Shown in pieces: positions 33,118 through 60,913 of a DNA stretch of 64,000 nt (position 1 is the first letter of the stretch; the number at the start of each line of letters is the position of its first letter). Where the stretch lies: the IMG/VR virus record IMGVR_UViG_3300028394_002328, positions 248,001 through 312,000 of that record; one strand, 5' to 3'. A program made the position numbers and the translations under genes. The notes below the pieces were generated by a model. The model was given only the letters and a program-made list of their open reading frames with translations, had not been told where the DNA came from and ran no database searches.

Positions 33118-33123
33118 ATTGTT

Positions 33124-33209
33124 TGGTGGAGTGTACTGGGATCGAACCAGTCGTGCCATAAAGACGGCGGATTTACAGTCCACTGCATCACCATTGATGC
33201 TTCCACTCC
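33124..33209 (-). tRNA. tRNA-Tyr (GTA)
   Basis: Long variable arm, CCA. Confidence 0.92.
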
Positions 33210-33275
33210 ATATTGAAACACACTTTTTAGTTCTTTCGACCTCTCCGCGTTCGGTAAAGGTAATGTGTTTTAATA

Positions 33276-33351
33276 TGGCGCGACTGGAGAGATTCGAACT
33301 CCCGACAGACCGGGTAGAAGCCGGATACTCTATCCACTGAGTTACAGTCGC
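33276..33351 (-). tRNA. tRNA-Arg (TCT)
   Basis: Cloverleaf, CCA. Confidence 0.93.
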
Positions 33352-33355
33352 AATA

Positions 33356-33431
33356 TGGCTCCTCGACCTGGGCTCGAACCAGGGACCAACGGATTAACAG
33401 TCCGGCACTCTACCAACTGAGCTATCGAGGA
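33356..33431 (-). tRNA. tRNA-Asn (GTT), copy 2
   Basis: Cloverleaf, CCA. Confidence 0.95.
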
Positions 33432-34240
33432 AAAAATTTTGTAAATGTGTTATTTAATAACGTTGTATTTAAACCTCTAAAACTTAAATATTCTATCAAG
33501 AAAGATAAACTATTATTATTTTCTTTAATACGCAAATTTCTATGTATTCCTAAAACAAAACTGTTTTCATATATCTTTTCTAAGACTTTTTCTGTAGGCA
33601 ATGAAGTTCGGTAATTCATAAACAACTTATTCATGCCGCTACTACAATGTAGTAATTCTGAATTAGGTAAAAACATATTATATAATGCAAACTCACTTGG
33701 CAATTCATCCTCAAAAAATAATGACGTATAATCAGTACAAATTATAGAATTGACTATAGATGTATTCATCTTATAAGGAGTCATGTAGTCAATATGAAGT
33801 TTTGGAATTTCTTTCTTATATTTTTTAGAAGTTTTTTCTAAAAAAACATCTACATCCATTCGTTTTTTGTTACCTTTATAATAAATGAACAAAGATCCAT
33901 TACCGTGAGGTACATTCCAATCAGTAAGAGTGAATGGCTTTATAAAAAAATTCTTACTATCTAATATCAAATAATTTTCAGTATTAATTTTTTTAGCAAT
34001 TTCTAATTTTAGAATTTGCTGTTGCCGCCAGCCAGATTGTAATACCAAATCATTTTGTATTAGTACTAATTTATGTCTAGTATAATACGGCGACAATGCC
34101 GATTGCCATTCACTTAATTCAATTTTAGTATCCTGAATTATAACGAAATGAGTTACATTGTCTATTACAAATTCCAAACTTGATGCTTGCAATAACATTG
34201 CATCAAAATCGGTACTAAAGGTAACAGTAACAAAATTCAT
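33422..34240 (-). CDS. DUF6492-like putative glycosyltransferase
   Basis: GWRQQQILKL, YLILDSKNFF, SEF..Y. Confidence 0.6.
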   Translation of the reverse strand: MNFVTVTFSTDFDAMLLQASSLEFVIDNVTHFVIIQDTKIELSEWQSALSPYYTRHKLVLIQNDLVLQSGWRQQQILKLEIAKKINTENYLILDSKNFFIKPFTLTDWNVPHGNGSLFIYYKGNKKRMDVDVFLEKTSKKYKKEIPKLHIDYMTPYKMNTSIVNSIICTDYTSLFFEDELPSEFALYNMFLPNSELLHCSSGMNKLFMNYRTSLPTEKVLEKIYENSFVLGIHRNLRIKENNNSLSFLIEYLSFRGLNTTLLNNTFTKFFPR

Positions 34241-34271
34241 ATTTAAATTACTGTCAGTAACGAGGGGCTAT

Positions 34272-34475
34272 CTATTTCATCAAAACCATTACTTTTTCAA
34301 AAGTTTCCTCAACTTCCCATGTACCGTGGGGAGGAGCAAACACAAAAGTAACTTCTTCTGATGTTCCATCTTCACGCAAGATAGTGCTTCTATGTACCGT
34401 TGCAATCAAATCTTTTCTAATTGCGACTTTTTTCCCTTTATGTGCGGGGTTAGCGTTGGTGAGTTTAATAAACAT
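34272..34475 (-). CDS. small FlbD-like protein
   Basis: MFIKLT...DLIATV...WEVEETFEKV. Confidence 0.55.
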   Translation of the reverse strand: MFIKLTNANPAHKGKKVAIRKDLIATVHRSTILREDGTSEEVTFVFAPPHGTWEVEETFEKVMVLMK

Positions 34476-34497
34476 TGTATTTTCTTTTAAAGTAAAT

Positions 34498-34573
34498 TGG
34501 TGCCCCCTGACGGATTCGAACCGCCGACCTACTGATTACAAATCAGTTGCGCTACCAGCTGTGCCAAGAGGGC
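34498..34573 (-). tRNA. tRNA-Thr (TGT)
   Basis: Cloverleaf, CCA. Confidence 0.95.
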
Positions 34574-37192: not shown

Positions 37193-37725
37193 TGAAATAT
37201 TATTTTAAAGTTAATTTTTTAGAGACTAGGAAGTACACTGATTATTTTTTAAAATTAATTTCCTCGACAGTTTTTATTAATAACAGTGTTGCTTCGGTGT
37301 CATTTAATATTAATGATCCGATGATAAAAGAAATTTCTTCAACATTGAAAGAACTGCAATTACCTATGATTGGTCAATTTATATTTTTTAAACATCACCG
37401 TAATCAAGATATACACAAAGAAGATATCAGATGTAGTTTAAATTTGCCTTTAATAGGATATGAAAACTCATTGATGCATTTTTATCAAATTAATGCTTTA
37501 CCTATAAAGAAAAAAAGTGCTTATTATTATAAAGAAACTGATGAAAAAACAATAATAGAGACTTTACCAGGTACAAACGAATGGGTTTTGGTTGATTCTT
37601 CCGTACCACATTGCATTGTTAACAGCGATTTTAATAATCCTAGATGTACGATAGCCTTAAGATTTTTAGGAAACCCGACACTGGAAGAATTGAAATTTAA
37701 AATTGAACAATTACAGCAACATTAA
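37192..37725 (+). CDS. cupin/2OG-Fe(II) oxygenase-like protein
   Basis: HKE...SLNLP...VPHCIVN...R..IALRF. Confidence 0.5.
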   Translation: MKYYFKVNFLETRKYTDYFLKLISSTVFINNSVASVSFNINDPMIKEISSTLKELQLPMIGQFIFFKHHRNQDIHKEDIRCSLNLPLIGYENSLMHFYQINALPIKKKSAYYYKETDEKTIIETLPGTNEWVLVDSSVPHCIVNSDFNNPRCTIALRFLGNPTLEELKFKIEQLQQH

Positions 37726-39180
37726 TTTTTCATAATATTGATTTTTTAATATTACCGTTTTTTCATCTAATTTTTTACCAAATGATTCAAAAGTTAAAGT
37801 ATCATCTTGTAGAAATTTAAATAAATCTTCCATAGTATATCCTAAATTAAGAATTCTTCCTACCCAAGTAGCAGCGCCAAATTTATTTTTCTTTTGAACT
37901 CTTGGGTCGTTTCTAATATCTTTTACTAAAGCAACTGCTTCTTGAAAAGTCATATCATCATTTTCCCACGGACGATCCTTTTCTATTTTAAACCCGAATT
38001 TTTTAGGATCCCTATCTATTTTACTAGAATTTCTTCCATCTGGAGAGTCTCTAACAGTAAGAGGCAAAAATCCAAATACATCAAGAGGACAATCATCACT
38101 AACTAAGTAATCTACGCTAGCCAGTATACTTTCCCTACTTTCACCAGGAAGTCCGGCAATAAAAGTACTACTCGCAATAATATTATTTTTCCATAACTCA
38201 TTACAATAACTTAAAGTTTCTTTAATTCTATTTGGACCCAGTCCTTTACCTATTTTTTTACCTGCTTCTTCATTCAGTGTTTCTATTCCAAAGTGAAGAC
38301 TTTTTGCACCGCTTTCTAAAAGGAGTTCCCTCATCTCAGGAAACTTCCAAATTAAATCTAATCTCGCATAACTAGTATATGTTAATTTAAACGGTAATGT
38401 AGTTAACACACTATGTATGAATTCCATTTTAGGAACACTTTCATTGATTAGTTCATCAGTAAACATGTAATGAGTAGTGCCATATAGTTCATAATTTCTA
38501 AGTAATTCTGATTTTAAAGTTTCTCCATTTTTTTGCCAATCACCTGCTTTTTTACCTATCAGGTCAAATCTGCAAAATGCACAACTAAAAATACACCCTC
38601 TAGCTATTTCCACAGGTAGAGATTCACCATGGAAAATAATATCATGGGGTTCATATATAATTTGACTATGAGCAAATTGTTCTTGAGTATAAAAATAATC
38701 ATTTCCGTCAATGTAAATACATTGGTCCTTTTTCATTATTTTTATATCATCGCCGTCTTTAAGATGTCTAATCAATTTAATAATAACATTATCGGCTTTG
38801 TTTAATATAATGTAATCAGTTCCTGCCCAATAACAATAGTCAGTTAGTCTAGCACCACCTAAACAAATTTTAACTTTTGAGTTTTTAGATTTAGCATAAT
38901 TGGCTATATTAGTAAATTCTTCATTAGGTCTTCCAAAATTCAAAACTTTTCCGTTAATTCGTTTTTCCATTAGGGTAGCACCAAACCCCACTAATAAAGT
39001 GTCTTTAGTGACAAATTTATCTATGATTTTTTCTAATTGGTCATATTGATAAAAACTAAAAAGATCAACAACTTGACAAGTATAGCCATATTTTCGTATT
39101 TCAGTAGCTACTTTATAAGTACCTGCATATTTTCCATATCCATATGTGTCAGCAACGTCAGTAAATAATATTATCTGCAT
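37711..39180 (-). CDS. B12-binding-domain radical SAM enzyme
   Basis: EIARGCIFSCAFC, N-terminal cobalamin-binding-like domain, FGIETL, AGLPGE. Confidence 0.85.
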   Translation of the reverse strand: MQIILFTDVADTYGYGKYAGTYKVATEIRKYGYTCQVVDLFSFYQYDQLEKIIDKFVTKDTLLVGFGATLMEKRINGKVLNFGRPNEEFTNIANYAKSKNSKVKICLGGARLTDYCYWAGTDYIILNKADNVIIKLIRHLKDGDDIKIMKKDQCIYIDGNDYFYTQEQFAHSQIIYEPHDIIFHGESLPVEIARGCIFSCAFCRFDLIGKKAGDWQKNGETLKSELLRNYELYGTTHYMFTDELINESVPKMEFIHSVLTTLPFKLTYTSYARLDLIWKFPEMRELLLESGAKSLHFGIETLNEEAGKKIGKGLGPNRIKETLSYCNELWKNNIIASSTFIAGLPGESRESILASVDYLVSDDCPLDVFGFLPLTVRDSPDGRNSSKIDRDPKKFGFKIEKDRPWENDDMTFQEAVALVKDIRNDPRVQKKNKFGAATWVGRILNLGYTMEDLFKFLQDDTLTFESFGKKLDEKTVILKNQYYEKLMLL

Positions 39181-41897: not shown

Positions 41898-42410
41898 ATG
41901 GATTATTCAGATTATTTTACAATATTAAACATAGATTTTCCAGTAAGGGAAAAACTGTATCATGAATTAAATTATGCTATTTCAAAAAATTTATTTTATA
42001 TCAGTCCTACTGAACAAGTGCGATATAATATAAACAAAGATTTAAGAAAAGAAATACAAGATATAATGCCGTTTAAAATTAGTGATTGTGGATTTTTTAA
42101 AAATGTTCCAAATTGGACCTATCCAGTTCATATTGATGGGCAAAGACTTTTTGCAGTTAATATGTTAATGGTAGATGATCATGATGATTTTGAGGTAGTA
42201 TTTTATGTAGATGATTCTAGTTTAGCAAATGATATTGATGGCACTGATAAAGAAAAATTTCGCATCCCTTATGCAAAAGACCAACTTGTATTACTAAACA
42301 CTAAGAAATATCATTCCGTGAGAAATATAAGTAACACTACAACAAGATATCTATTATCTATTGGTAATATAGATACTGGCTATCATGAAATTAAAAATAA
42401 ATTTATTTGA
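41898..42410 (+). CDS. cupin/2OG-Fe(II) oxygenase-like protein
   Basis: VHID...YHSVRN...RYLLSI. Confidence 0.6.
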   Translation: MDYSDYFTILNIDFPVREKLYHELNYAISKNLFYISPTEQVRYNINKDLRKEIQDIMPFKISDCGFFKNVPNWTYPVHIDGQRLFAVNMLMVDDHDDFEVVFYVDDSSLANDIDGTDKEKFRIPYAKDQLVLLNTKKYHSVRNISNTTTRYLLSIGNIDTGYHEIKNKFI

Positions 42411-43314
42411 TATTTAAATCGTTAAGAATTTTTTGATGCTGTTTTAAGAATTTTATACTTTCAATTTTAGCAGCCTCACCAAATATGCCAATTGGGATAG
42501 ACCCTTTACTTAGCATATCTCTTCTAGTCTCTGCTGAATTCATTTCAGTTTGAAAGTCATTGATAATTTTTTCTTTAACAGATAAAGGTAATGACTTATC
42601 AACAACTACCCCTAAAGTTAATTGCGTTGGAAATTTTTCTTTATACTCTTCGACCCAAGTATTAACCTTTACACCCGTAAAAGAAATATCGTGAGTAGAA
42701 ATTATTAAATTTATTTTGTCATTATTGATGAAAGAGAGTATTGTAGGTAAATTTGCAAAATAGCAATCTACATGTCCTCCCAACAAATCAAGTGTTGGTT
42801 TATTTCCACCCGTAATATAGTTAACTATTTGATGATCTTTGTTTATTTTATTAAAAAATATTTTAGAAGTTATTTCTTCTACCCCGTTAACAGCGGTACT
42901 TGCAAAATTCAAATCCTTTTTATAATTTGATATATCACGAACATTTTTAAATCCCAAATCTGTCCTACATGCTAATACAGCCGGACTTGATGCAATTAAT
43001 CCAATTATCTCAAGGTCATCTACATTGTAAATTAAATTTTCCTTATATATAATTTTATTAGTAACAAATGTATTTTCCATGACAACGAATGACATAGATT
43101 TTTTTTCTTGCATTTCTCGTATACCAAGCTGACCGTTTGCCCCTGGTTTATTAGTAACCATATAATTTAATGATAACTTATTTTTTATCAATGCTCTAGC
43201 TATAATATCAGTATTACCACCAACCGCATACCCAACAATTAGTTCTTGTTGACGATTAGCAAAGCTATTTGTTATTAACCCAAAAATTAAAACTAATTTA
43301 ATTAGAACTTTCAT
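42403..43314 (-). CDS. Bug/TctC substrate-binding protein (divergent)
   Basis: VGYAVGGNTDIIAR, NKPGANG, DLLGGHVD. Confidence 0.85.
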   Translation of the reverse strand: MKVLIKLVLIFGLITNSFANRQQELIVGYAVGGNTDIIARALIKNKLSLNYMVTNKPGANGQLGIREMQEKKSMSFVVMENTFVTNKIIYKENLIYNVDDLEIIGLIASSPAVLACRTDLGFKNVRDISNYKKDLNFASTAVNGVEEITSKIFFNKINKDHQIVNYITGGNKPTLDLLGGHVDCYFANLPTILSFINNDKINLIISTHDISFTGVKVNTWVEEYKEKFPTQLTLGVVVDKSLPLSVKEKIINDFQTEMNSAETRRDMLSKGSIPIGIFGEAAKIESIKFLKQHQKILNDLNIK

Positions 43315-44497: not shown

Positions 44498-45679
44498 ATG
44501 AATCCAAAAACCTGTATGTTTCCTTTCACTTCATTGAGTGTGTCGCCCCGAGGCGCAATCAGACCATGCTGCATGTATAATAGTCCTGATATGCCCACTT
44601 GGGAAAATATCAAAGACTTAACATCGGAAGTACCATGGCCTAGCAAATCTATTAAGATACTTCAAGAAAAAATGTTGAGTGATCGCATAGAAGAATTAAC
44701 TCCATTGTGCAACTCTTGTTGGGAACCTGAAAATGCAGGACTTGATAGTCATAGATTAAGATACCAAAGATTATTAGCACTTCCAAATGAAGAGTTAATT
44801 AAAACCCCTAAACTAACATTTTTAGATTTACAGTTTGGATACTTATGTAATTTAAGTTGTATTATGTGCCATCCCGAAGAAAGTTCACAGGTTCAAAAAA
44901 CAATTTTCAAATTAATAGACAATACTTCAAATACTAAACAAAAAAAAATTTACCAATCTAAGGTAAATTTATATGACAACCATGATTGGACTGTAGATGA
45001 AAATTCGTATCAAAAAGTTTTGGAATTATGCCAGCCTGTCAAGAATATTAAAATATCAGGGGGAGAGCCATTTTTTAATCCAAAATTTAAACCTTTCTTA
45101 GAATTTTTATTATCAAAAAAAGTTCCAATTGAATACTTGCATGTGACCACAAATTTAACTATATACGATAAAGACATTGTTGAACTGTTAAATAGATTTA
45201 CTAATGTTAGATTTAGATTCAGTTTAGAATCAATAGGTAAAGAAGATGACTTTATAAGATGGCCTAGCAGATGGGAGGAAAAACAAGAAAATTTACATGC
45301 ATATTTAAGTCAGTTACACACAAAAAACATTGTTTCTAGTACATGCATCCAAAGTTTAAATCTATTTTCTTTTTCAAATACTATTAAATTCTTGAAAAAT
45401 TTACGTTATAATATCAATATTCAACAACAAATTGCTGAAAATTCATTAGCTGGGATTTATTACTCCGACAAACAATATATTGAACACTACTTAAAAAATA
45501 ATGAAGCTAATTTTATATCTAAGTATTTAGAAAATATTATAACCCATATCAATGATCCTTCATTTCAAGTTAATTATTTTCTAGATATGGCCAAACTACA
45601 AAATAAAAATATACAAAACGAATTTCCAATTTGGTATGAGTTTCATACCAAATATATTAGAGATTCAAATTCAACGTAA
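44498..45679 (+). CDS. radical SAM enzyme with N-terminal twitch/SPASM-like domain
   Basis: CMFP..RPCC..CNSCW; CNLSCIMC; SGGEP. Confidence 0.88.
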   Translation: MNPKTCMFPFTSLSVSPRGAIRPCCMYNSPDMPTWENIKDLTSEVPWPSKSIKILQEKMLSDRIEELTPLCNSCWEPENAGLDSHRLRYQRLLALPNEELIKTPKLTFLDLQFGYLCNLSCIMCHPEESSQVQKTIFKLIDNTSNTKQKKIYQSKVNLYDNHDWTVDENSYQKVLELCQPVKNIKISGGEPFFNPKFKPFLEFLLSKKVPIEYLHVTTNLTIYDKDIVELLNRFTNVRFRFSLESIGKEDDFIRWPSRWEEKQENLHAYLSQLHTKNIVSSTCIQSLNLFSFSNTIKFLKNLRYNINIQQQIAENSLAGIYYSDKQYIEHYLKNNEANFISKYLENIITHINDPSFQVNYFLDMAKLQNKNIQNEFPIWYEFHTKYIRDSNST

Positions 45680-51324: not shown

Positions 51325-53706
51325 TTATCTCCTATACTGTTGTTCTATCATCTGTTGATGTAAACGGTCTGTTGATAACTGTCTTAACGCTCTAGCATTA
51401 TCAACTGGGGTTTGGTTCTTATAGATTTCTTTTGGCTCATACATTTTGCCATCTTTAAGCATCAAATTAGTGTAGTTACTATAGCCAATTGGAGTAGTAG
51501 CCATCTTATTAATATCCACATTACCTGCTAGTTCATTTGCTGCGACATTAGTTTTTACTTTTTGATTTGACTCCGTAGTAGAATTTGTAGTTACAATTGG
51601 TTTTGTTTCAACTACTTCATTAAGTGGGTCTGTGCGATTAGTCATAAAGCCTGCCGTACTGCTAACCTGTTCTACTTCTGTTTGTCTAGTAAAACTCACT
51701 TGCTGTGATGTGGTCTGCTGCTGTTCAACAGGTGCTGCTGCCATAGCATAAAACAAGGTGTTCTGCGGTTGTACATAGGCAAACGTCATAAAAGATTGTT
51801 GATCGGTTGAAGATTGTGAAAATACAGGTGTATTTGATGTAGTAATGATTGGAGTTACTGCGGTCGCCACTGTTGTATTAGCAGATTTGTTAGGTTGCGG
51901 GGGTAGACTACTTGTTACTGTAATTTGAACAGGTTGAGTTGATTGTACCCTGTTAAAATAAGTTTGAGCAGCAGATATCATGCTATATTGTGAATCATTA
52001 GCCGTTGTTGTAGTAGATGACACAGTAGTAACTACGGGTGTAGATACTCTCAATGGGGCGGTTTGAACAGTTGTTGCCACAGTGGCAGATTTATTTTCGT
52101 TATTAAGGGGTGCTGCATTAACCATTGATAGACCTGATTGCGCTTGGCTAACAGGCGCACTCGCAGTGGCAGTGTTGGTTTGTCTTTGAGTCTGTACTGA
52201 TGCATTGGACAGTGTTTGGCTCATTGTAACTGCGGCTGTAGCAACTGACACAGCCTGTTGTTGAGCCTTGTCACCGGCCGCTGTTGCTTCTGTTGTAGCC
52301 ATTTGTACTGCGGAATTTTGTATTGCCTGTTCACGCTGTTGATTCTTAGCAATTATACTTAATGCTGCTGCTACAGTTTTGGATTGAGGACTGCCTTTGG
52401 CTGCTGTAGTATTGCTTGTTTGCTGTGGTGTTGATTGAGCAATATTGGCAGTGGTAACAGCAGAAGTACTAGCTGTGGGTGGTTCCGCTATTGGAGTGGA
52501 TGTTGTATTACTGGTACTAAGTTTGGCAGCCATTGCTTGAGCAAAGCCACTACAATCGGGACTATATAGTGGGTTCTTAACACAAGGATCTGGTGTATAA
52601 ATCAGACTCATTGAATAATTGCCAATTGAAGAACCTATACCAGATGCCCCACCTGAAAGTCTAATATTACCAAGTGCGGATTGATTCATGCTACTTGATA
52701 GTAGTAGTTGTGAATTTACTGTTCCACTAGTGCCTTCACTATTGAAACTATGATTTCTTGAAATTATGGTTTGATTACTGCTATTGGTCATTGAGGCACT
52801 AGCACTGACATATGCTGGAGTGTTCATCACCCAACTACACCCATCTTGATTCCAAGCAGTACATCCAAAGAACCCTTGCCCCACTGTATAATCAAATTTA
52901 TAATTAAAGCCATGTACTGTAGCACCAAACCCAGCACTTTTTAATGCTGTGTTAATAGCAACTACTTGAGTCATTGAAGTAGATACAGCATCAGGATTTG
53001 GGGCAAGATTACCGGTAGTTATTATGTTACCAAATCCCGAGCAAATAGAACTGTAAGCAGGATTTAATTTACAAGGATCTACAGTGTATAGTAAATTAAA
53101 GCTATCAACATGTACTCTAGGCCCATAATATCCTGCCCAGTTGTTTTGATCCTTACCAGTAAAACTAACGGTTATACTACTAGCTGAGGCGATATCGTAG
53201 CGATTATTAAAAAATTGTGTACCCGAAAAAGTAGTAAAGTTTGGCAAGTTTTGATTATAGTCATAATTGAAACTTTCTACAATGTTACCAGTACTACCTT
53301 TTAAGGAAACGTTGCCGGTTAAAGTTCCTCTATTACCCTGATAATTATTGAGGTCATTATTGATTTGCCACTGATAACGATATCCACTAAGTTGGACTCC
53401 TGCTCCAGAATTTGCCAATGCCTGATTAATCGCAATTGTTTGACTTACTGTACGAGGAGCATTGCTAAAAATAATATTACCCGTCGAGGGATTATATGCG
53501 GGTGTAGGTCCACCACTCGTTCCACCTGCCTCACCAGTAACGGTATTGTTCCAAGGTAGTCCACCGCCCAAATTCAGTATATTGTTAGTACTGTTTAGGT
53601 TTAGACCTGTAACAGGGTCTATATTTTGACTATTAGTGGAAGCCGAATAACTTGAAAGCAACAATGCCCAACAAGCTACCGAGACCAATTTTCTTAAGGG
53701 TGTCAT
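51325..53706 (-). CDS. large secreted protein with DPC-x2-NP-x-YS-x2-C-x-G repeats and S/T/Q/A-rich stalk
   Basis: Signal peptide; two beta-rich domains, each ending in a DPC..C motif. Confidence 0.75.
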   Translation of the reverse strand: MTPLRKLVSVACWALLLSSYSASTNSQNIDPVTGLNLNSTNNILNLGGGLPWNNTVTGEAGGTSGGPTPAYNPSTGNIIFSNAPRTVSQTIAINQALANSGAGVQLSGYRYQWQINNDLNNYQGNRGTLTGNVSLKGSTGNIVESFNYDYNQNLPNFTTFSGTQFFNNRYDIASASSITVSFTGKDQNNWAGYYGPRVHVDSFNLLYTVDPCKLNPAYSSICSGFGNIITTGNLAPNPDAVSTSMTQVVAINTALKSAGFGATVHGFNYKFDYTVGQGFFGCTAWNQDGCSWVMNTPAYVSASASMTNSSNQTIISRNHSFNSEGTSGTVNSQLLLSSSMNQSALGNIRLSGGASGIGSSIGNYSMSLIYTPDPCVKNPLYSPDCSGFAQAMAAKLSTSNTTSTPIAEPPTASTSAVTTANIAQSTPQQTSNTTAAKGSPQSKTVAAALSIIAKNQQREQAIQNSAVQMATTEATAAGDKAQQQAVSVATAAVTMSQTLSNASVQTQRQTNTATASAPVSQAQSGLSMVNAAPLNNENKSATVATTVQTAPLRVSTPVVTTVSSTTTTANDSQYSMISAAQTYFNRVQSTQPVQITVTSSLPPQPNKSANTTVATAVTPIITTSNTPVFSQSSTDQQSFMTFAYVQPQNTLFYAMAAAPVEQQQTTSQQVSFTRQTEVEQVSSTAGFMTNRTDPLNEVVETKPIVTTNSTTESNQKVKTNVAANELAGNVDINKMATTPIGYSNYTNLMLKDGKMYEPKEIYKNQTPVDNARALRQLSTDRLHQQMIEQQYRR

Positions 53707-55159
53707 CTTCTTTTACCTCTACTGCCACTGGCATTTTTTCTGGGTTGGCTTCCCATGCTGCTCGTGCCGCATCTCCAATTTTACCTTCATACGGGCAAGG
53801 TGTGCCTGCGCTCCACATAGCATCAAACACACGGCGATCCTGACACATTGTGGCAACTGCTGCTACCTTCATACCCATATCGTAAAGTGTTTTGGCTAAC
53901 TTTAGTCTTTCGCAATTAACATCTCTAATAGTAGAACCACTACTAACACCAAAGATTTGTGTTTGAACAGCACCACTTACACCAGTGGTACATAGGTCAG
54001 CATTACCACCACTCATCATAGTAGGAGCGATTGCTGTAGGAGGGGGTTGTATAACTCTTTGTGTAATCTCTGACGAATTAATATTTCGGTTAGTCATGTC
54101 ACCAGTTTGTACATTTTGGTTGACATTGTTACTATTATTAGTATTACTACTAGTACTTGAACTTAAACTAGTGTTTACATTGTTATTGTTGTTGGTCATT
54201 GTACCTGAGTTAATGTTATTATTGGTATTAACATTACTGTTTGTGCTGGTGCTGTTATTAATATTTCTATTAGTCATGCTGCCACTAGTGATATTATTGT
54301 TAGTATTAACAGCAGTGCTAGTGCTTGCATTGTTATTGTTATAAGTCATTGTGCCAGTATTAACATTCACGTTTCTGTTAGTACTTGTGCTGGTACTAAC
54401 ATTATTATTGTTATTGGTCATCGTACCATAATTGTAATTGGTACTGTTATTAGTATTGACATTTCTGCTTGTACTAGTATTAACATTTTTATTGACATTA
54501 TTGCTAGTACTAGCGTTATTGTTATTGTATGTCATTGTACCGCTGTTGATATTGTTGTTGGTATTGACATTGTTACTAGTACTAGTGCTGGTACTGGCAT
54601 TATTGTTATTGTATGTCATTGTACCTGAATTAATATTGTTATTGGTATTGACACTGGTACTTGTGTTGGTATTGATATTACGGTTAGTCATATCACCACT
54701 ATTGACATTATTGTTGTTATATGTCATTGTACCACTATTAACATTGTTATTGGTATTAACACTAGTACTAACGTTATTATTGTTGTTAGTCATTGTTCCA
54801 GTGTTCACATTGTTATTGTTATAAGTAACAGTTCCGCTGTTAACATTGTTATTGTTATTGTTATAAGTAACAGTTCCGCTGTTGACATTGTTGTTGGTAA
54901 CCGTACCGCTTTGGATATTATTATTTGTATTAACGCTGGTATTGACGTTATTGCTGTTGCTGTTTACTGTACTAGTGCTCGTACTATTGCTGCTACTAGT
55001 ACTGGTATTTGTTGTATTGACACTGCTGGTACTATTACTAGTGCTATTAGTATCCACCAAAGTTTTAGAATCATAACTACCTTGATTAATTAAAGTTTGA
55101 CTATAGGCCGTACCCGTAAAAAAGACGATACTGGTAGATACCAATATTTTTTTAAGCAT
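53633..55159 (-). CDS. secreted Asn/Thr-rich repeat protein with Cys-rich C-terminal domain and TM tail
   Basis: Signal peptide; repeats such as NNNNVNSGTMTY; domain with four Cys; hydrophobic C-terminus. Confidence 0.8.
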   Translation of the reverse strand: MLKKILVSTSIVFFTGTAYSQTLINQGSYDSKTLVDTNSTSNSTSSVNTTNTSTSSSNSTSTSTVNSNSNNVNTSVNTNNNIQSGTVTNNNVNSGTVTYNNNNNNVNSGTVTYNNNNVNTGTMTNNNNNVSTSVNTNNNVNSGTMTYNNNNVNSGDMTNRNINTNTSTSVNTNNNINSGTMTYNNNNASTSTSTSNNVNTNNNINSGTMTYNNNNASTSNNVNKNVNTSTSRNVNTNNSTNYNYGTMTNNNNNVSTSTSTNRNVNVNTGTMTYNNNNASTSTAVNTNNNITSGSMTNRNINNSTSTNSNVNTNNNINSGTMTNNNNNVNTSLSSSTSSNTNNSNNVNQNVQTGDMTNRNINSSEITQRVIQPPPTAIAPTMMSGGNADLCTTGVSGAVQTQIFGVSSGSTIRDVNCERLKLAKTLYDMGMKVAAVATMCQDRRVFDAMWSAGTPCPYEGKIGDAARAAWEANPEKMPVAVEVKEDDTLKKIGLGSLLGIVAFKLFGFH

Positions 55160-55210: not shown

Positions 55211-56212
55211 TTAACATTTATCTACTAAGTTATCTCTAAATATACGCCAACACTCTTCCCAACTCCAACGTAGACTAGCTTCTTCTACACGAACACGATC
55301 TAATCGCAAACATTGGTCAATAGCAGTCTTTAAATCCTCATCCATATAACCTGTTAGTCCCTGATCTATAACATCTTTAGGTCCAGTTACTGGATATGCT
55401 GCTACTGGTGTGCCACAAGCCATAGCTTCAATCATTACTATACCAAACGTATCCCAATAACTAGGGAATACGAATACATCAGCATCGGCGTAATACTTAG
55501 CTAGTTCTGCCCCACGTTTTACTCCTACGAATTCAACATCAGGATATTCACGCTCCATACGACGGCGGCATGGACCATCACCTACGACTATTTTGGTAGC
55601 ACTTGGATAGTATAATCTACAAAAATCATCTAAGTTTTTTTCTTTGCTGACACGCCCTACATTTAACAATATGGGCTGTGATAGTTCTGTAGCAGTTCTA
55701 GTGCTGCTGCTAAATATGGTACGATCAACCCCGCGAGTCCAAGGCTTGATGTCGGTTCTAAATCCACGACTAGCCAAATCATCAACCATGCTTTGTGTAG
55801 TGGTCAGTACACGACCACTATGTTTATGAAACCAACGCAAGTAACGATAACTCCAGTCAGTGGGTATGCCTGCAATTTTGTTTATGGCTTCGGGGAAACG
55901 AGTATGGTAGCTAGTATTATAACGCCATCCCCAATAGTCCATCCAGCAACGGGCAGCAAAGCCCACTGGACCTTCTGTAGCAATGTGTATGTAGTCGGGA
56001 TTTACTTTTTCAATAATCCTGCCAATGCCCCAGGTCCAACTAAGTTTGATTTCACCATAGCCAGGACAGGGAATATTAACAAACTGCCGGGGATCAAGAT
56101 AAACAAAATCATAGCCATCCCGCTCAGCCAAAACTTCCAGGTTATGAAAGGTAGTAACAACACCATTAACCTGCGTTGGTTCATTGTCGGTTATGATTAA
56201 TACTGTCTTCAT
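55211..56212 (-). CDS. GT4 glycosyltransferase, Agt-like diacylglycerol glycosyltransferase
   Basis: TD...QVNGVV, HIATEGPVG, SYHTRFPE, VGRVSKEKN, DTFGIVMIEAMACGTPV. Confidence 0.85.
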   Translation of the reverse strand: MKTVLIITDNEPTQVNGVVTTFHNLEVLAERDGYDFVYLDPRQFVNIPCPGYGEIKLSWTWGIGRIIEKVNPDYIHIATEGPVGFAARCWMDYWGWRYNTSYHTRFPEAINKIAGIPTDWSYRYLRWFHKHSGRVLTTTQSMVDDLASRGFRTDIKPWTRGVDRTIFSSSTRTATELSQPILLNVGRVSKEKNLDDFCRLYYPSATKIVVGDGPCRRRMEREYPDVEFVGVKRGAELAKYYADADVFVFPSYWDTFGIVMIEAMACGTPVAAYPVTGPKDVIDQGLTGYMDEDLKTAIDQCLRLDRVRVEEASLRWSWEECWRIFRDNLVDKC

Positions 56213-56966
56213 TTTCACGCACCTCTGCCCATGTTACGATTTCCCAGCGACCATCCCAATGTTCAACTAGTGCTGTACAACTTTCACACCAGTCACCATC
56301 GTTCATGTAGATTACGCCGTTGATTTCTTTGATTTCAGCCTTATGTATATGCCCACAGATCACACCATCGTAGCCCTTCTTTTTGCAATAACCGGCTAGA
56401 TTTTGTTCAAATTGAAACATAAAGTCTACCGCTTTTTTGACCCGGTGCTTAAGGTACAAGCTAAGGCTCCAGTAGCCAAAACCCAAACGATGACGAATCC
56501 AATTGAATTTAGTATTGATATTGAGTACGCAGTCATATGCTTTGTCTCCTAATATGCTGAGCCAAGGGGCCAGCCTAGTAATACCATCAAATAAATCACC
56601 ATGAACTACAAGATACCTTTTTCCATCTATACCGGTGTGAATAGCCTGATTACAGATTTTAATACGACCAAAACTAACACCATATGGTATAAGTGGGCGT
56701 AAAAATTCATCATGATTGCCTGCCACATAAACTACTTGTGTTCCGCGTTTGGCATGACCTAATACACGGCGAATTACATTGGTATGACTTTGATGCCACT
56801 TTAGAGTGTTCTGTTTCATTTTCCACGCATCTATAATATCGCCTACTAGATACAACGTTTCGCAACTATTATGTTTTAAAAAGTTGTTTAGATAGTCTGC
56901 TTTACAGGCTTTAGTACCGAGGTGTACATCACTAATAGAGATTGTACGGTAAGTTGTTTGCGGCAT
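56181..56966 (-). CDS. PlcP-like Mn-dependent phospholipase C (LpxH/YbbF metallophosphoesterase family)
   Basis: SDVHLG, LVGDIID, GNHDEFLR, HGDLFD, GYWSLS, CGHIH, NDGDWCESCTAL. Confidence 0.85.
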   Translation of the reverse strand: MPQTTYRTISISDVHLGTKACKADYLNNFLKHNSCETLYLVGDIIDAWKMKQNTLKWHQSHTNVIRRVLGHAKRGTQVVYVAGNHDEFLRPLIPYGVSFGRIKICNQAIHTGIDGKRYLVVHGDLFDGITRLAPWLSILGDKAYDCVLNINTKFNWIRHRLGFGYWSLSLYLKHRVKKAVDFMFQFEQNLAGYCKKKGYDGVICGHIHKAEIKEINGVIYMNDGDWCESCTALVEHWDGRWEIVTWAEVRENEDSINHNRQ

Positions 56967-56971
56967 AATAC

Positions 56972-57006
56972 TATTTAATGTTTAATATATTACAAAGCTG
57001 TTACAA
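56972..57006 (-). promoter_or_regulatory. Pho-box-like repeat plus TAAATA promoter (plcP-agt)
   Basis: TGTAAC-N5-TGTAAT-N11-TAAATA. Confidence 0.75.
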
Positions 57007-57010
57007 TCAT

Positions 57011-57035
57011 AAAAAAAGAGCCATATGGCCCTTTA
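57011..57035 (-). terminator. intrinsic terminator
   Basis: AAAGGGCC-ATAT-GGCTCTTTTTTT. Confidence 0.75.
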
Positions 57036-57117
57036 GTGCTGGTTACGAGCGTCCAGCGATCCCTCTATCTTGGGCCCGTTTTAAACAAACTACTAAACCA
57101 GCGTTTTGCGCTGGTAA

Positions 57118-57759
57118 TTACTTTCCCAATAAACTATCAACCTTCGCTTCAGCAACATTCAACCGATGCTCAATATCATCTAGTGCAGGATCTGCTGGAG
57201 CGGAAACTGCTTCAAATATTTGTTGATGAACTTCAGAATTAACTGCTTCTCCTGTTGCTGTTGAAACAATATGAGCTACCGCAGCGGCAATTTCTTCTGT
57301 ACCTGCAGTTGGTGCAGGCATTTCAGCAACTGCTGCTGTAATAGCGGCTGTAATTGCTTCAGGGTCTGTGACAACTTCAGGCTCTGCTGTAACAACTGCT
57401 AGTACCGCTGCTTTTACAATATCAGCAACTTCAGGGTTAACAATTGCATCTGCTTCGTGTTGAGCAGCTACTACATCGCCAACAATGCCTGCGGCTTCTG
57501 CATGGTCAGCACTTGGTGAAAGTGCTAGTACATCTTCAACAGAAACTGGTGCTTCATCAGCTACGGAATAAACAATGGCGTCAATATGGCTCTCAGTTTT
57601 TTCAGCGATCAAATGATCAACTTGAACTTCAACAACTGACAATCTGGTGTCTAGTTCTTCAATGCTTGTGGCATAATCTGTGTTAACTTCTGTGCCAGTT
57701 AGTGTTGCTAACTTAGCTTCTACTGCTACTAATCTTGCGGCTAAATCTTGTAATCTCAT
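57118..57759 (-). CDS. acidic Ala/Val-rich coiled-coil protein
   Basis: Start moved to 57759 (AAGGAG SD); three LxxRLxxxExxx repeats. Confidence 0.75.
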   Translation of the reverse strand: MRLQDLAARLVAVEAKLATLTGTEVNTDYATSIEELDTRLSVVEVQVDHLIAEKTESHIDAIVYSVADEAPVSVEDVLALSPSADHAEAAGIVGDVVAAQHEADAIVNPEVADIVKAAVLAVVTAEPEVVTDPEAITAAITAAVAEMPAPTAGTEEIAAAVAHIVSTATGEAVNSEVHQQIFEAVSAPADPALDDIEHRLNVAEAKVDSLLGK

Positions 57760-57805
57760 GGGTTGCTCCTTTAGGTTAGGTGAGTGAATCATGTCCACTC
57801 ACCCT

Positions 57806-57840
57806 TATTTAACTGCTACTATATTAAAGTATTATTACAA
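57806..57840 (-). promoter_or_regulatory. Pho-box-like repeat plus TAAATA promoter
   Basis: TGTAAT-N5-TTTAAT-N11-TAAATA. Confidence 0.6.
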
Positions 57841-57844
57841 AATA

Positions 57845-59419
57845 TCAGAAACTCAATAATAGTAGCTGTCCACCTTCAATTAATTCAGCAGCATTAGCAC
57901 CAGTTGCTGCTTTGTGATTTTGATCAACCAATAAGAAGTAACGCTTGCCATCAGTACGACCTAAGATACTGGTGATTTCAATGATACCACTGGATTCTTC
58001 GTCATTGGTCTCAGTTCCAACAACACCTGTGTAATAATCACCAAACAGCTTCTCATCATGTTGAGCAAGTAGTGTTAGTGCCTTGGTAACAGGATTGTAT
58101 CTCCAAATCTTACCATTGTGATTGTTACCACCCACATCTTCTTGTAGAATGATTGTGCCATCGCTAGCAACAGTCATGTTGTCAAACATCTGTGTGCCAT
58201 GAACACGACCGGCAACAGTAACTGTTTCAGTACCATCGAGCACCATTTCAAGGATACCACCCGATTCAGGACGGGTTAAATCAGTAAATGTCATGCTCCA
58301 AAGGCGTGTGCGACCAACTTGAGCAGTATTAGTAATACTGGTATTGATCTTGCCCCCGGTGTTGTCTTTAGCAGCATCTACTGTGTTGGTTGTTACAAAG
58401 TAGTAGCGGTTCTTGTTAACTGTATCCCAAGCACCATCTTCTGGACGCAAGAAACTTGTACCAGCAACACCAGTTACAGGAACATTGGGAACAAAACTAA
58501 ATGTAGCAGTCTTGTTGACTAGTCCTAAACCAGCATCAGTAGCAGTGGTTTCATTAGCAGCAACACCACCAACATTGACCACAGCACGATACAGCGTACC
58601 ATTGGTTAGGCCTGCTTTATCAACTTCAGTAGCACCAGTCTTGTTCTTAGTGCCGACATACATATAAACACCATTGCTGCCACTGTCGCTATTGGCCATA
58701 ACAATGGTCTTATCGCCGCTGTTAGGATGTGCGATTAGATTTTCCCAGCCTACACCAAATGTGGTAAATCCACCAAAGTGTGGGAGAATGTATGCTTTGC
58801 CTTTGTCTGCTCCACTAGCCACAATAGCAACACCCCGACCCATTGTAACAGTACCGTTAGCGGTTTCTTCACCAGTCATAAACATTTTAACCGAAGAACC
58901 ATTGCCTGTTGCTGAGTTGAAGAAAGCGCCGGCTGCTGGTAGATCGGCTGAACAGAAACGCTGAAATGCTACAGCAGTTTGCTCGGCCCAAGCACCATTG
59001 ACCTGTGCATAAACTTTTTTCATTAGGTCACTACCGCTCTTGACCTGTAGAGTAGTTTTATCAATAACCCACTCACTAACAAAAGCACCAATACCACCAT
59101 GAGCACGGGCAATACCAACAGTGTTGGCCAGTTCATGAGCCATTAGCACGGTGAATGTGTTGTCACCATTGTCGTAAGCACCTAGCCCATCCGGGATACC
59201 TACCATGCGATAAGTGCCAACAGCGTCACCAACGGTTAAGATACTGGCAACTTTTACGCTGCTGTCAATTGGTGTGATATAAGGATCTGCTGAACTACTA
59301 GTTGCTTTGCCTGATGTAAAACCAGTAACTTCTTTGGGTGCTGCTACAGTGGTGTCATCGCTACCACATGCTGTTAATAGAGCCGTTGCTACGGCTACTG
59401 CTAGAACGGTATATTTCAT
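57845..59419 (-). CDS. PhoX-like alkaline phosphatase lipoprotein
   Basis: Lipobox LTAC; PDGLG, HE, RFCS, GEE, WEN, RPED, DN, QED, ESSG. Confidence 0.75.
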   Translation of the reverse strand: MKYTVLAVAVATALLTACGSDDTTVAAPKEVTGFTSGKATSSSADPYITPIDSSVKVASILTVGDAVGTYRMVGIPDGLGAYDNGDNTFTVLMAHELANTVGIARAHGGIGAFVSEWVIDKTTLQVKSGSDLMKKVYAQVNGAWAEQTAVAFQRFCSADLPAAGAFFNSATGNGSSVKMFMTGEETANGTVTMGRGVAIVASGADKGKAYILPHFGGFTTFGVGWENLIAHPNSGDKTIVMANSDSGSNGVYMYVGTKNKTGATEVDKAGLTNGTLYRAVVNVGGVAANETTATDAGLGLVNKTATFSFVPNVPVTGVAGTSFLRPEDGAWDTVNKNRYYFVTTNTVDAAKDNTGGKINTSITNTAQVGRTRLWSMTFTDLTRPESGGILEMVLDGTETVTVAGRVHGTQMFDNMTVASDGTIILQEDVGGNNHNGKIWRYNPVTKALTLLAQHDEKLFGDYYTGVVGTETNDEESSGIIEITSILGRTDGKRYFLLVDQNHKAATGANAAELIEGGQLLLLSF

Positions 59420-59444
59420 TTTAAAACTCCTTTTGTATGTTTGT

Positions 59445-60425
59445 TTATTTGACTAACTTTGCCCAATCGGCACGAACTTGATCCTTAACCTTTTGGGGTA
59501 ATGGAACATAATCTAGGTCTGTAGCGTCCTTGTCACCCTTTGTATAGACCCAATCAAAAAATTTGGTAACTTGTTTTGTTCGCTCTCCAGTAGGATATAT
59601 GAGAATAAATGTAGCGGCAGTAATAGGCCATCCATCTAAATCATTGAGATTAACTGCCATGTTGGGCACTGACCAGTCAGCAGTCTTGGCACTTTCAGCA
59701 AATGTTAAGTCATCTGGTTGAACTACAGCACCTTTGCGGTTCTTCATGGCCACATGAGTTAGTTTGCTCTGTTTAGCAAATGCGTACTCAACATAACCAA
59801 TTGATCCTGCCAGTTGTTGAACGTTGGCAGCAACACCAGCATTGCCCTTACCTGCTGACAAGTTTGTGGGCTTCCAAGTAACTGTTTTACCCGTACCGGT
59901 ACCTGCTTTAAAATCAGGATTTACTTTGCTTAAGTAATCAGTAAACACAGCAGTTGTACCTGATCCATCAGCACGAACCACTACGTTGATAGCAGCATCA
60001 GGTAATGCTAGACTTGGATTGAGTTTTGTAATAGCAGCATCGTTCCACTTGCTGATTTTACCTTGATAAATGTCGGCTAGTGTCTTGCCATCAAGAATCA
60101 TTTTACCTGGCTCAATACCTTTGATATTGATTACAGCAACAACTCCACCGATAACTGATGGGAATTGATATAGCCCAACTTCTTTTAATTTATTGTCTGG
60201 TGTAGGATCATCACTTGCACCAAAATCTACGGTTTTAGCAATGATTTGAGCAACACCACCGCCACTTCCGATTGGATTGTAGTTAACAGTAGTACCAGTT
60301 TCTTTGTTGTAGGCTGCTGCCCATTTTGAATAAATAGGAGCCGGGAAAGTTGCCCCGGCTCCAGTAATCTGTGCTTGTGCAGCAAATGCGGCTGCGGCTA
60401 ATAGAATTCCAACAATTTTCTTCAT
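59445..60425 (-). CDS. pstS: phosphate ABC transporter substrate-binding protein
   Basis: GAGATFPAP, GSGGG, DFGASD, RADGSGTT, IGYVE. Confidence 0.97.
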   Translation of the reverse strand: MKKIVGILLAAAAFAAQAQITGAGATFPAPIYSKWAAAYNKETGTTVNYNPIGSGGGVAQIIAKTVDFGASDDPTPDNKLKEVGLYQFPSVIGGVVAVINIKGIEPGKMILDGKTLADIYQGKISKWNDAAITKLNPSLALPDAAINVVVRADGSGTTAVFTDYLSKVNPDFKAGTGTGKTVTWKPTNLSAGKGNAGVAANVQQLAGSIGYVEYAFAKQSKLTHVAMKNRKGAVVQPDDLTFAESAKTADWSVPNMAVNLNDLDGWPITAATFILIYPTGERTKQVTKFFDWVYTKGDKDATDLDYVPLPQKVKDQVRADWAKLVK

Positions 60426-60463
60426 TTGATTTCCTTTAATAATATGTGCTCTTGCACAATTAT

Positions 60464-60498
60464 TATTTAATAATAATTATGTTACAGGAATATTACAA
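60464..60498 (-). promoter_or_regulatory. Pho-box-like repeat plus TAAATA promoter (pstS-phoX)
   Basis: TGTAAT-N5-TGTAAC-N11-TAAATA. Confidence 0.8.
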
Positions 60499-60529: not shown

Positions 60530-60913
60530 TTATTGAACAGTCCGTTTTGATTTGTAATCTTCTATTGCCGATTTAATCGCATCTTCTGCTAAGATTGAGC
60601 AGTGGATTTTGACTGGCGGGAGAGCGAGTTCTTCCGCAATCTGTGTGTTTCTAATTGTTGCTGCCTCGTCGAGGGTTTTGCCTTTAACCCACTCTGTGAC
60701 AAGACTTGAGCTAGCAATCGCTGACCCGCACCCATACGTTTTAAATCTAGCATCTTCTATTACTCCATTCTCATTTACTTTAATTTGAAGTTTCATCACA
60801 TCTCCGCATGCCGGGGCTCCGACTAGTCCGGTGCCTATTGTATCGTCAATTTCAAATTTTCCAACATTGCGTGGGTTTTCATAATGATCAACTACTTGAG
60901 GTGAATAAGCCAT
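60530..60913 (-). CDS. iscU: Fe-S cluster scaffold
   Basis: DHYENPRNVG, APACGD, YGCGSAIASSS, LPPVKIHCS. Confidence 0.97.
   Translation of the reverse strand: MAYSPQVVDHYENPRNVGKFEIDDTIGTGLVGAPACGDVMKLQIKVNENGVIEDARFKTYGCGSAIASSSLVTEWVKGKTLDEAATIRNTQIAEELALPPVKIHCSILAEDAIKSAIEDYKSKRTVQ

Follow-up and report, generated by a model that had tools for sequence, protein, structure and literature searches.

Does a jumbo phage carry the means to replace the phosphorus-containing lipids of its host's membrane by sugar lipids, thereby gaining access to the phosphorus that they contain? This question was raised by a stretch of 64,000 nucleotides (hereafter the window), which is 100% identical to part of the 335,035-bp freshwater contig IMGVR_UViG_3300028394_002328. 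The first-pass annotation had described five consecutive co-oriented genes, namely pstS, a PhoX-like lipoprotein, an acidic protein, an LpxH-family metallophosphoesterase and an overlapping GT4 glycosyltransferase, and had interpreted the last two as a PlcP-Agt pair acting within a phosphate-scavenging module. All five ORFs were confirmed on the minus strand (Table 1), and every part of this interpretation that could be assessed in silico was supported, though with some corrections given below.

Table 1. Positions in the window of the genes and sequence elements of the phosphate-related locus.
Position	Strand	Feature	Remarks
60464..60498	-	Promoter before pstS	TTGTAAT-ATTC-CTGTAAC, 10 nt, TTAAATA (Pho-box-like direct repeat plus a -10-like element)
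59445..60425	-	pstS, periplasmic phosphate-binding protein	Sec signal peptide
57845..59419	-	Lipoprotein, distant relative of PhoX/DUF839; putative periplasmic phosphoesterase	524 aa; lipobox LLTAC
57806..57840	-	Promoter before the acidic gene	TTGTAAT-AATA-CTTTAAT, 10 nt, TTAAATA
57118..57798	-	Acidic coiled-coil protein, function unknown	226 aa; probable start ATG 57759, with AAGGAG upstream
57015..57034	-	Terminator-like hairpin followed by a T7 run	Ends the pstS-lipoprotein-acidic gene unit
56972..57006	-	Promoter before plcP	TTGTAAC-AGCT-TTGTAAT, 10 nt, TTAAATA, then 5 nt to the ATG
56181..56966	-	plcP, calcineurin-type metallophosphoesterase (predicted phospholipase C)	261 aa
55211..56218	-	agt, GT4 (predicted DAG-dependent glycolipid synthase)	335 aa; overlaps plcP by 38 nt from the GTG, or by 32 nt from the more likely ATG at 56212, which has GAGGT 7 nt upstream
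53633-55159		Secreted Asn/Thr/Ser-rich repeat protein	Signal peptide
51325-53706		Secreted Asn/Thr/Ser-rich repeat protein	Signal peptide

We first asked whether the metallophosphoesterase is a PlcP or an LpxH. The latter possibility had to be considered, since JGI and GenBank name homologues "UDP-2,3-diacylglucosamine hydrolase/LpxH", surveys of AMGs file viral lpxH under LPS biosynthesis, and the pair could then be an LpxH plus an LPS-type glycosyltransferase acting on lipid A or lipopolysaccharide. Yet, the LpxH equivalog models scored only 44 and 33 bits against cut-offs of 134 and 190, LpxH in the PDB was hit with E=3e-4, and identity to E. coli LpxH was 27% over 124 aa, limited to the N-terminal half. 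In contrast, the protein was 55% identical (1e-95) to PA3219 of P. aeruginosa and 48% identical (5e-84) to S. meliloti PlcP over its full length, whereas these two characterised PlcPs share only 46-47% identity with each other (PMC8528852). Of note, NCBI also misnames true PlcPs LpxH. In the phylogenetic tree, E. coli LpxH was a very distant outgroup, and all metal-binding motifs were invariant. The term "LpxH-family" used in the first-pass annotation is right for the fold only: the AF2 model shows a predicted LpxH-like fold, with a calcineurin-type core and a helical lid at residues 123-196, and LpxH entries were the top 9 Foldseek hits (TM 0.53-0.67), with about 19% identity in the structural alignment. 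Furthermore, the step after LpxH in lipid A synthesis normally uses LpxB (GT19) rather than a GT4, and no other lipid A gene is nearby. An LpxH role for the pair appears very unlikely.

The glycosyltransferase was 43% identical (1e-91), over its full length, to P. aeruginosa Agt1. It also keeps the signature motifs and mutagenesis-defined residues of the SAR11 enzyme GTcp, with GRVSKEKN at 188-195, FPSYWDTFG at 251-259, H105, D256 and E264 (PMC8231724). The phage copies form one clade with 99 support, which branches, however, outside all sampled bacterial Agt sequences, so that the donor sugar and even the acceptor could have shifted. We considered the possibility that this GT4 glycosylates the two neighbouring repeat proteins, as GT4 enzymes do for serine-rich adhesins, the phosphoesterase being an unrelated neighbour. 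These proteins, with their long N/T/S-rich repeats, follow the GT4 gene without a terminator and are conserved there in the closest relatives, and weak generic GT4 hits to SdgA-type models were also observed. Yet, the repeat proteins are absent next to the pair in the more distant phage relatives (contigs L005, L012, L014, L015, L086 and L171), whereas the phosphoesterase gene and the GT4 gene are adjacent in all of these. In 66 of the 80 closest bacterial loci, the GT4 homologue is likewise immediately downstream of the phosphoesterase gene, as in the "type 2" plcP-agt neighbourhood (PMC4796936). Together with the presence of the Agt-specific motifs, including the Asp that replaces the usual GT4 Glu, this makes glycosylation of the repeat proteins an improbable function.

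Another possibility was that the segment is host DNA, due to a chimeric assembly, a mis-called viral contig or a very recent uptake with no role in the phage. The GC content of the module (0.40-0.45) is indeed somewhat above the mean of the window (0.36), and most large ORFs of the window lack PHROG hits. However, the same gene order occurs in independent assemblies from different samples, the pair is present in 16 related viral or phage-like contigs of up to 513 kb, and the module is flanked by phage-family genes and tRNA arrays (18-19 tRNA genes in the window). The best cellular homologues reach only 50-60% identity. GC3 is 0.29-0.34, which matches the phage, against about 0.6 GC in the bacterial loci checked. 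dN/dS amounted to 0.04-0.09 for plcP and 0.04-0.08 for agt across phage lineages diverged to dS>0.7. These findings indicate that the genes are long-term phage residents under purifying selection, and we regard host contamination as very unlikely.

The other genes of the locus were then examined to see whether the module is related to phosphate. PstS passed the NCBIfam equivalog cut-offs (NF008171, 405 bits against 339; TIGR00975, 338 bits against 205) and matched PHROG 5385, phosphate transporter subunit (E=9.5e-63); its dN/dS was about 0.09-0.11. The description of the lipoprotein as PhoX-like holds only remotely: the protein itself hit no Pfam, NCBIfam or PHROG model, but 19 of 20 homologues hit PF05787, homologues at about 50% identity are named alkaline phosphatase PhoX by NCBI, and the Atlas score to PhoX clusters was 0.96. 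Its AF2 model (pLDDT 84) is a propeller but shows no specific match to any solved PhoX, and the protein is too remote from these to assign an activity. The acidic protein belongs to a virus-only family, its nearest Atlas clusters being 100% viral, with a dN/dS of 0.18-0.29. It is repeatedly linked to phage plcP, since homologues of 55-61% identity over residues 10-226 lie directly downstream of the phosphoesterase gene in a second phage group (contigs L019, L020, L022 and L034). In relatives, the slot between pstS and plcP holds a different putative phosphoesterase, as expected for a phosphorus-scavenging locus.

A feature not previously noted is that pstS, the acidic gene and plcP are preceded by the same promoter architecture, a Pho-box-like direct repeat followed by 10 nt and TTAAATA. 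This 35-nt composite motif has 3 exact copies in the 64 kb of the window, all just upstream of these genes, and the 18-nt core has 2 exact hits against 0.02 expected. As the motif was defined post hoc from the sites themselves, these chance estimates are partly circular. Before pstS, the half-sites and TTAAATA are conserved in the relatives L009, L003 and L086 while other bases vary; the motif before the acidic gene is present at the same place in L009 and L010; and the spacing between the plcP motif and the ATG is invariant in five relatives, though the motif is absent upstream of plcP in the more distant L005, L012, L014 and L015. The half-sites differ at 1-2 of 7 positions from the proteobacterial consensus, CTGTCAT-N4-CTGTCAT (PMC8528852). 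In L003 the first half-site before plcP is CTGTCAC, the same half-site as in the P. aeruginosa plcP Pho box, which was recovered as a positive control. The terminator-like hairpin upstream of plcP is conserved in L010, L011 and L003. Lake metatranscriptome contigs identical to the window covered 57126-60445, with pstS and the acidic gene represented, and stopped at 57126; no contig of the best run covered plcP-agt.

Taken together, these data favour, with moderate confidence, the view that the window belongs to a jumbo phage carrying a phosphate-stress module made of three transcription units. The first (pstS and the PhoX-family lipoprotein) and the second (the acidic protein) would act on the periplasmic side to capture external phosphate, and the third (plcP-agt) at the cytoplasmic face of the inner membrane. 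We propose that PlcP, a predicted Mn/metal-dependent phosphoesterase with an LpxH-like lipid-binding lid, cuts phospholipids into diacylglycerol and a phospho-headgroup, and that Agt transfers glucose or glucuronate from a UDP-sugar onto the diacylglycerol, so that a phosphorus-free glycolipid replaces the lost phospholipid and the membrane stays functional until lysis. Host phosphatases would release phosphate from the headgroups for nucleotide synthesis, each copy of the genome needing about 670,000 phosphorus atoms (2 x 335,035); that the module encodes no cytoplasmic phosphatase to finish phosphate release counts against this view. The module is probably switched on by the host PhoB regulator through the Pho-box-like repeats. 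No activity data exist for any phage copy and the host is unknown; the enzyme activities, PhoB binding, the sugar used and the benefit to the phage remain inferences.

Alternatively, the enzymes could be PlcP and Agt while the selected benefit is not phosphorus supply. The phage might change the membrane or surface composition of the infected cell to exclude other phages, to resist grazers or antimicrobials, or to lower the phosphorus demand of the cell so that it survives a long latent period. Lipid remodelling does change phage attachment and predator-prey outcomes in marine bacteria (PMC9938194, PMC9457565), and the linkage to a complete phosphorus module is not universal, since many phages carry plcP without agt or pstS nearby (about 65 IMG/VR contigs and the 302-kb contig L172). 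However, in this phage the promoter architecture shared with pstS and the exchange of phosphoesterases at the locus tie plcP to phosphate economy, and the inner-membrane lipids made by Agt are not surface-exposed in a Gram-negative cell. This alternative is possible, but we consider it less likely.

Phage homologues of the phosphoesterase gene without agt are already present in deposited genomes under the name LpxH, although no paper linking plcP with phages or AMGs was found within the literature searched. The genes of Pelagibacter phage Mosig EXVC030M and Synechococcus phage S-SRM01 encode proteins 49% and 36% identical to that of the window. In Mosig the gene lies back to back with pstS, but neither phage has agt beside it; both genes are annotated as UDP-2,3-diacylglucosamine hydrolase, and the gene is not discussed in the Mosig genome note.

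The closest bacterial counterpart is the PlcP-Agt lipid remodelling operon (S. meliloti SMc00171; Phaeobacter MED193; SAR11 HTCC7211 PlcP and GTcp; P. aeruginosa PA3219-PA3218; Burkholderia plcP-agt-dagK), with which the phage pair shares the two enzyme families at 43-55% identity, the order and tight coupling of the genes, the signature residues and a Pho-box-like repeat upstream (PMC4796936, PMC8528852, PMC8231724, PMC13691135). It differs in being encoded by a phage, in forming its own clades, in its AT-rich composition, in a plcP mRNA that is probably leaderless, in its association with pstS, the PhoX-family lipoprotein and the virus-only acidic protein, and in the absence of dagK. The phosphate-stress AMGs of cyanophages (pstS, phoA), which appear to be controlled by the host PhoBR system (Zeng & Chisholm 2012; PMC10976474), similarly are host-derived Pho-regulon genes, including pstS, preceded by Pho-box-like sites and presumably beneficial under phosphorus limitation. 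Those modules, however, only import or scavenge external phosphorus, whereas the present one, with a box of the proteobacterial rather than the cyanobacterial type, would add an internal source, the membrane phospholipid, plus a replacement lipid.

ORF listing confirmed the five co-oriented minus-strand genes that the first-pass annotation had described as pstS, a PhoX-like lipoprotein, an acidic protein, a metallophosphoesterase and a GT4 glycosyltransferase. The coordinates of these genes and of the other features mentioned here are collected in the table. The GT4 gene overlaps the 3' end of the phosphoesterase gene, by 38 nt if translation starts at the GTG, or by 32 nt from the better-placed ATG at 56212, which follows GAGGT. 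PstS scored above both curated equivalog thresholds (NF008171, 404.9 bits against 339; TIGR00975, 338.2 bits against 205).

Features of the window and of related contigs
Sequence	Coordinates	Strand	Feature
Window	59445-60425	-	pstS
Window	57845-59419	-	524-aa protein with a lipoprotein signal (LLTAC), PhoX-family relative
Window	57118-57798	-	Acidic 226-aa coiled-coil protein
Window	57015-57034		Conserved hairpin plus T-run
Window	56181-56966	-	261-aa metallophosphoesterase, predicted plcP
Window	55211-56218	-	335-aa GT4 glycosyltransferase, predicted agt
Window	53633-55159 and 51325-53706	-	Two secreted proteins with long Asn/Thr/Ser-rich repeats
Window	60530-60913	-	IscU Fe-S scaffold gene
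Window	23052-24089 (-), 37711-39180 (-), 44498-45679 (+)		Three radical-SAM proteins, one with a SPASM domain
Window	29481-30449 and 42403-43314	-	Two TctC/Bug-family periplasmic solute-binding proteins
Window	22988-34573	-	tRNA genes (18 by ARAGORN, 19 by Rfam; the extra one at 33127-33209)
Window	3323-4099	+	Second, unrelated metallophosphoesterase (phrog_1649, E=4e-55)
Window	57126-60445		Span covered by lake metatranscriptome contigs
Window	55268-55541 and 56369-56700		Variant contigs in the best-matching DNA run
L019, L020, L022, L034 (second phage group)	2258-2911; 6834-7487; 3610-4263; 5838-6491		Homologues of the acidic protein
L003, L004, L011 (close relatives)	L003 4654-5913 and 5979-6197; L004 8343-9602; L011 352-1608		419-aa putative calcineurin-like phosphoesterase and 72-aa ORF
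L003, L005, L011, L012, L086 (relatives)	L003 7219-7407; L005 8758-8913; L011 2765-2938		62-aa ORF between plcP and agt
L004	2002-2793		Counterpart of the second metallophosphoesterase
L171 (378-kb JGI contig)	859-6236		plcP-agt pair beside CsgF, CsgG, a curlin-repeat protein and a FecR-like gene
L145 (Methylotenera sp. MAG, 670-kb contig)	4992-5759		Closest 'bacterial' PlcP to the jumbo-phage clade

We considered the possibility that the segment was host DNA. The window is 100% identical to a 335,035-bp IMG/VR contig. Its tRNA genes lie in several clusters interleaved with small ORFs, and it encodes a SleB-type endolysin, a phage-family phosphoesterase, a polynucleotide kinase and other PHROG families, although most large ORFs are orphans. 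No near-identical phage was found in INPHARED. The sequencing runs that hold the stretch are freshwater and lake metagenomes. The run that best holds it also contains variant contigs, with 25 differences within agt and a joint that skips 330 nt within plcP, indicating that several related phage strains coexist in the sample.

To distinguish between a PlcP (the metallophosphoesterase-type phospholipase C of phosphorus-stress lipid remodelling) and an LpxH acting in lipid A synthesis, we compared the phosphoesterase with models and characterised members of both families. It has the Pfam Metallophos domain (E=8e-11) and the complete set of metal-binding motifs (DxH, GD, GNH[D/E], H, GH, GHxH): D13/H15, G42-D43, G83-N84-H85-D86, H122, G205-H206 and H208, numbered from Met1, are invariant in 22 phage and bacterial sequences. 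The LpxH equivalog models scored well below their cut-offs (NF003743, 44 bits against 134; TIGR01854, 33.4 bits against 190.35), solved LpxH chains matched only at E=3e-4 over the N-terminal half, and E. coli LpxH gave 27% identity over 124 residues.

Reference PlcPs were taken from two records, CP090106.1 (3.72 Mb, labelled 'pSymB') and NZ_CP137508.1, which are filed as plasmids but appear to be chromosomal DNA of S. meliloti and P. aeruginosa, so that their labels are misleading. In P. aeruginosa, we inferred PA3219-PA3218-cyaB from the phosphoesterase-glycosyltransferase-adenylate cyclase arrangement; the PA3219-PA3218 operon itself is described in PMC8528852. In S. meliloti, the gene lies beside AHL synthase and LuxR genes, which we take to be sinI/sinR, and the gene hence to be SMc00171. 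The window protein is 55% identical (1e-95) to the first and 48% identical (5e-84) to the second over the full length. As the two references share 47% with each other (46% according to PMC8528852), the phage protein is as close to confirmed PlcPs as they are to each other. An AlphaFold model (pLDDT 81) was closest to LpxH structures (TM 0.53-0.67 at about 19% identity), with a helical insertion at residues 123-196, where LpxH has its lipid-binding lid. The predicted fold class is therefore LpxH-like, whereas the family is PlcP. In a maximum-likelihood tree, E. coli LpxH was a very long outgroup and the phage sequences sat among agt-linked proteobacterial genes. A lipid A role was rejected on the basis of the curated thresholds, the pairwise identities and the phylogeny.

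The glycosyltransferase contains both GT4 halves (Glyco_transf_4, E=2.9e-15; Glycos_transf_1, E=4.3e-22) and is 43% identical (1e-91) over 329 residues to P. aeruginosa Agt1 (PA3218). Agt1 makes monoglucosyl-diacylglycerol when expressed in E. coli and is itself 41% identical to the MED193 Agt (PMC8528852). The SAR11 enzyme GTcp (334 aa) and its group are defined by GRVAxEKN, FPSxTDTFG, a Gly-rich N-terminus and a His104-Asp256 dyad in which Asp replaces the usual GT4 Glu; the residues essential in GTcp are G82, G85, R190, K195, T257, F258, G259 and E264 (PMC8231724). The window protein has GRVSKEKN (188-195), FPSYWDTFG (251-259, with D256, T257, F258 and G259), E264, H105 and EGPVG (82-86), which are conserved across the phage clade and the bacterial partners, and also QVNGVV. 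The phage GT4s formed a single clade with 99 support, lying outside the sampled bacterial Agt sequences, among which Agt1 is nested, so that specificity cannot be read from the tree. We also considered membership in an anti-phage defence system. Yet, the weak Pfam 'GT4-conflict' hit was below its cut-off, and PADLOC found no component among the four module proteins other than pstS or the two repeat proteins downstream. The latter follow agt without a terminator and contain, for example, NNNNVNSGTMTY units. The first has a C-terminal hydrophobic anchor and matches phrog_20531. They are conserved downstream of agt only in the closest relatives.

The closest cellular homologues of the phosphoesterase, from Alpha- and Betaproteobacteria, are only 50-60% identical. 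In 66 of these 80 loci a full-length GT4 homologue (37-47% identical) lies directly downstream on the same strand, which is the plcP-agt neighbourhood described for marine bacteria (PMC4796936). Two groups appeared among viral contigs. The first carries the pair (57-97% identical) and includes contigs of 101, 200 and 335 kb; ENA and JGI contigs of 513 and 378 kb, with phage-like gene content, also carry it, and the arrangement is found in 16 related viral or phage-like contigs. In the 378-kb contig, the pair lies beside curli genes, which were reported before in pelagimyophages (PMC7029224). The second group (46-51% identical, about 65 contigs) carries plcP alone and includes Pelagibacter phage Mosig, where the gene is back to back with pstS. 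In a protein database, all 8,000 scored candidates passed E<=1e-5, and the best were 74-93% identical. Several relatives have a 62-aa ORF between plcP and agt that is missing in the window, where the two genes overlap instead, and in L011 about 1 kb separates them.

The module genes have a GC3 of 0.21-0.34, close to the overall GC of the window (0.36), whereas the two bacterial loci checked are about 0.6 GC. Among phage orthologues, dN/dS was 0.04-0.09 for both enzymes, even at dS>0.7. The pair is therefore an old, selected resident of phage genomes, not contamination. The identity of the host is only hinted at. The pstS homologues returned no organism names. The closest 'bacterial' PlcP, in the Methylotenera MAG, sits among small co-directional hypothetical ORFs with no agt, in what looks like a prophage or phage-derived island, hinting at Methylophilaceae as hosts of related phages. 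The two TctC genes, which belong to a family apparently much expanded in Betaproteobacteria, and PhoX-like names among homologues are weak hints of a betaproteobacterial host.

Promoter architecture was not part of the first-pass annotation. Directly upstream of pstS and of plcP we found TTGTAAT-ATTC-CTGTAAC and TTGTAAC-AGCT-TTGTAAT, respectively, each consisting of two 7-nt direct repeats 11 nt apart, as in the Pho box CTGTCAT-N4-CTGTCAT, which they resemble but do not equal. The strict E. coli consensus gave no hit at up to 3 mismatches, and at 4 mismatches there were 52 background hits in this AT-rich DNA; a module-specific motif was therefore used. The 18-nt pattern had 2 exact hits in the window against 0.02 expected, and a third hit with one mismatch lies before the acidic gene. 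Each of the three is followed after exactly 10 nt by the -10-like TTAAATA, and the 35-nt composite has three exact copies in 64 kb, all in this module. The motif was, however, derived from the sites on which it was tested, and the more distant relatives lack it. In relatives that have it, the half-sites and TTAAATA are conserved while the spacers differ, and L003 has CTGTCAC as its first half-site, which is the half-site used in the P. aeruginosa plcP Pho box, recovered by our scan as a control. A box placed 10 nt before the -10 element, in place of the -35, would correspond to the classical layout of PhoB promoters. For plcP, TTAAATA is 5 nt from the ATG in all five relatives, which predicts a leaderless mRNA. 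The hairpin and T-run separate the acidic gene from the plcP promoter.

In one lake metatranscriptome, contigs identical to the window covered the acidic gene, the lipoprotein gene and pstS almost continuously. Coverage stopped at the 3' end of the acidic gene and no contig covered plcP-agt, although depth was low and absence of contigs is not absence of transcripts. The uneven pattern argues against carried-over DNA and fits the predicted unit boundary.

Homologues of the 524-aa lipoprotein at about 50% identity are named PhoX by NCBI, 19 of 20 homologues (50-86% identical) match PF05787 (best E=1.7e-8), and Atlas gives 0.96 to PhoX clusters. The protein itself, however, had no hit even at E<=5. 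Its AF2 model (pLDDT 84, pTM 0.87) is a confident beta-propeller, but the top 50 Foldseek PDB hits were generic propellers, none described as PhoX, and the sequence profile found no PDB relative. We therefore call it a PhoX-family relative with unproven activity. The acidic protein belongs to a virus-only family. Homologues 55-61% identical over almost the whole length lie directly downstream of plcP in the second phage group, and the PlcPs of the two groups are only about 50% identical. This is a repeated linkage with no known function, which no current model explains. In the close relatives L003, L004 and L011, the slot between pstS and plcP holds, instead of the PhoX-like lipoprotein and the acidic protein, a 419-aa protein that Atlas places with calcineurin-like phosphoesterases, plus a 72-aa ORF. 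Though only a lead, this suggests that phosphoesterase cassettes are exchanged at this site. Of note, the IscU gene lies immediately upstream of pstS, and the phage may supply its own Fe-S assembly for the three radical-SAM proteins encoded elsewhere in the window.

We infer that PlcP cleaves inner-membrane phospholipid to diacylglycerol and phospho-headgroups, that Agt glycosylates the diacylglycerol, that host enzymes release phosphate, and that PhoB activates the three promoters, the gain being phosphorus for a 335-kb genome. We are highly confident of the gene identities, whereas Pho control is only somewhat more likely than not, and the phosphorus-mining role is at best slightly favoured. 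It is possible, though we consider it a little less likely than not, that a large, abundant lineage of freshwater jumbo phages (300-513 kb) and, with plcP alone, a second widespread phage group that includes pelagimyophage Mosig carry a Pho-controlled pathway that liquidates host membrane phospholipid and, in the jumbo lineage, also rebuilds the membrane from glycolipid. If so, part of the non-phosphorus lipid signal seen in phosphorus-poor waters is virus-driven, which bears on the use of glycolipid and phospholipid ratios as phosphorus-stress markers in lakes and oceans, and the virus-only acidic protein would be a new, phage-specific partner of the pathway. The conserved promoter motif likewise raises the question of whether host PhoB governs heterotroph-infecting phages as it does cyanophages.

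In the literature searched, we found no paper combining plcP with pelagiphage, auxiliary metabolic genes (AMGs) or viral contigs, and the pelagimyophage, Mosig and marine methylophage papers do not mention the gene. Viral 'lpxH' (K03269) is listed as a lipopolysaccharide-biosynthesis AMG in surveys of oligotrophic sea water and of Lake Baikal viral transcripts. These entries may be the same gene under the wrong name, in which case the 'lpxH' of current catalogues would be a misnamed phospholipase C and viral AMG tables would have to be read differently. The enzymes themselves are ordinary members of known families; what is new is their presence as an apparently regulated pair in phages. Phage phosphate AMGs described so far (pstS, phoA, phoH) act on external phosphorus or have an unclear role. 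A phage-borne PlcP-Agt pair would add an internal source. Membrane phospholipid probably represents a sizeable share of cell phosphorus, and the need is greatest for phages with very large genomes.
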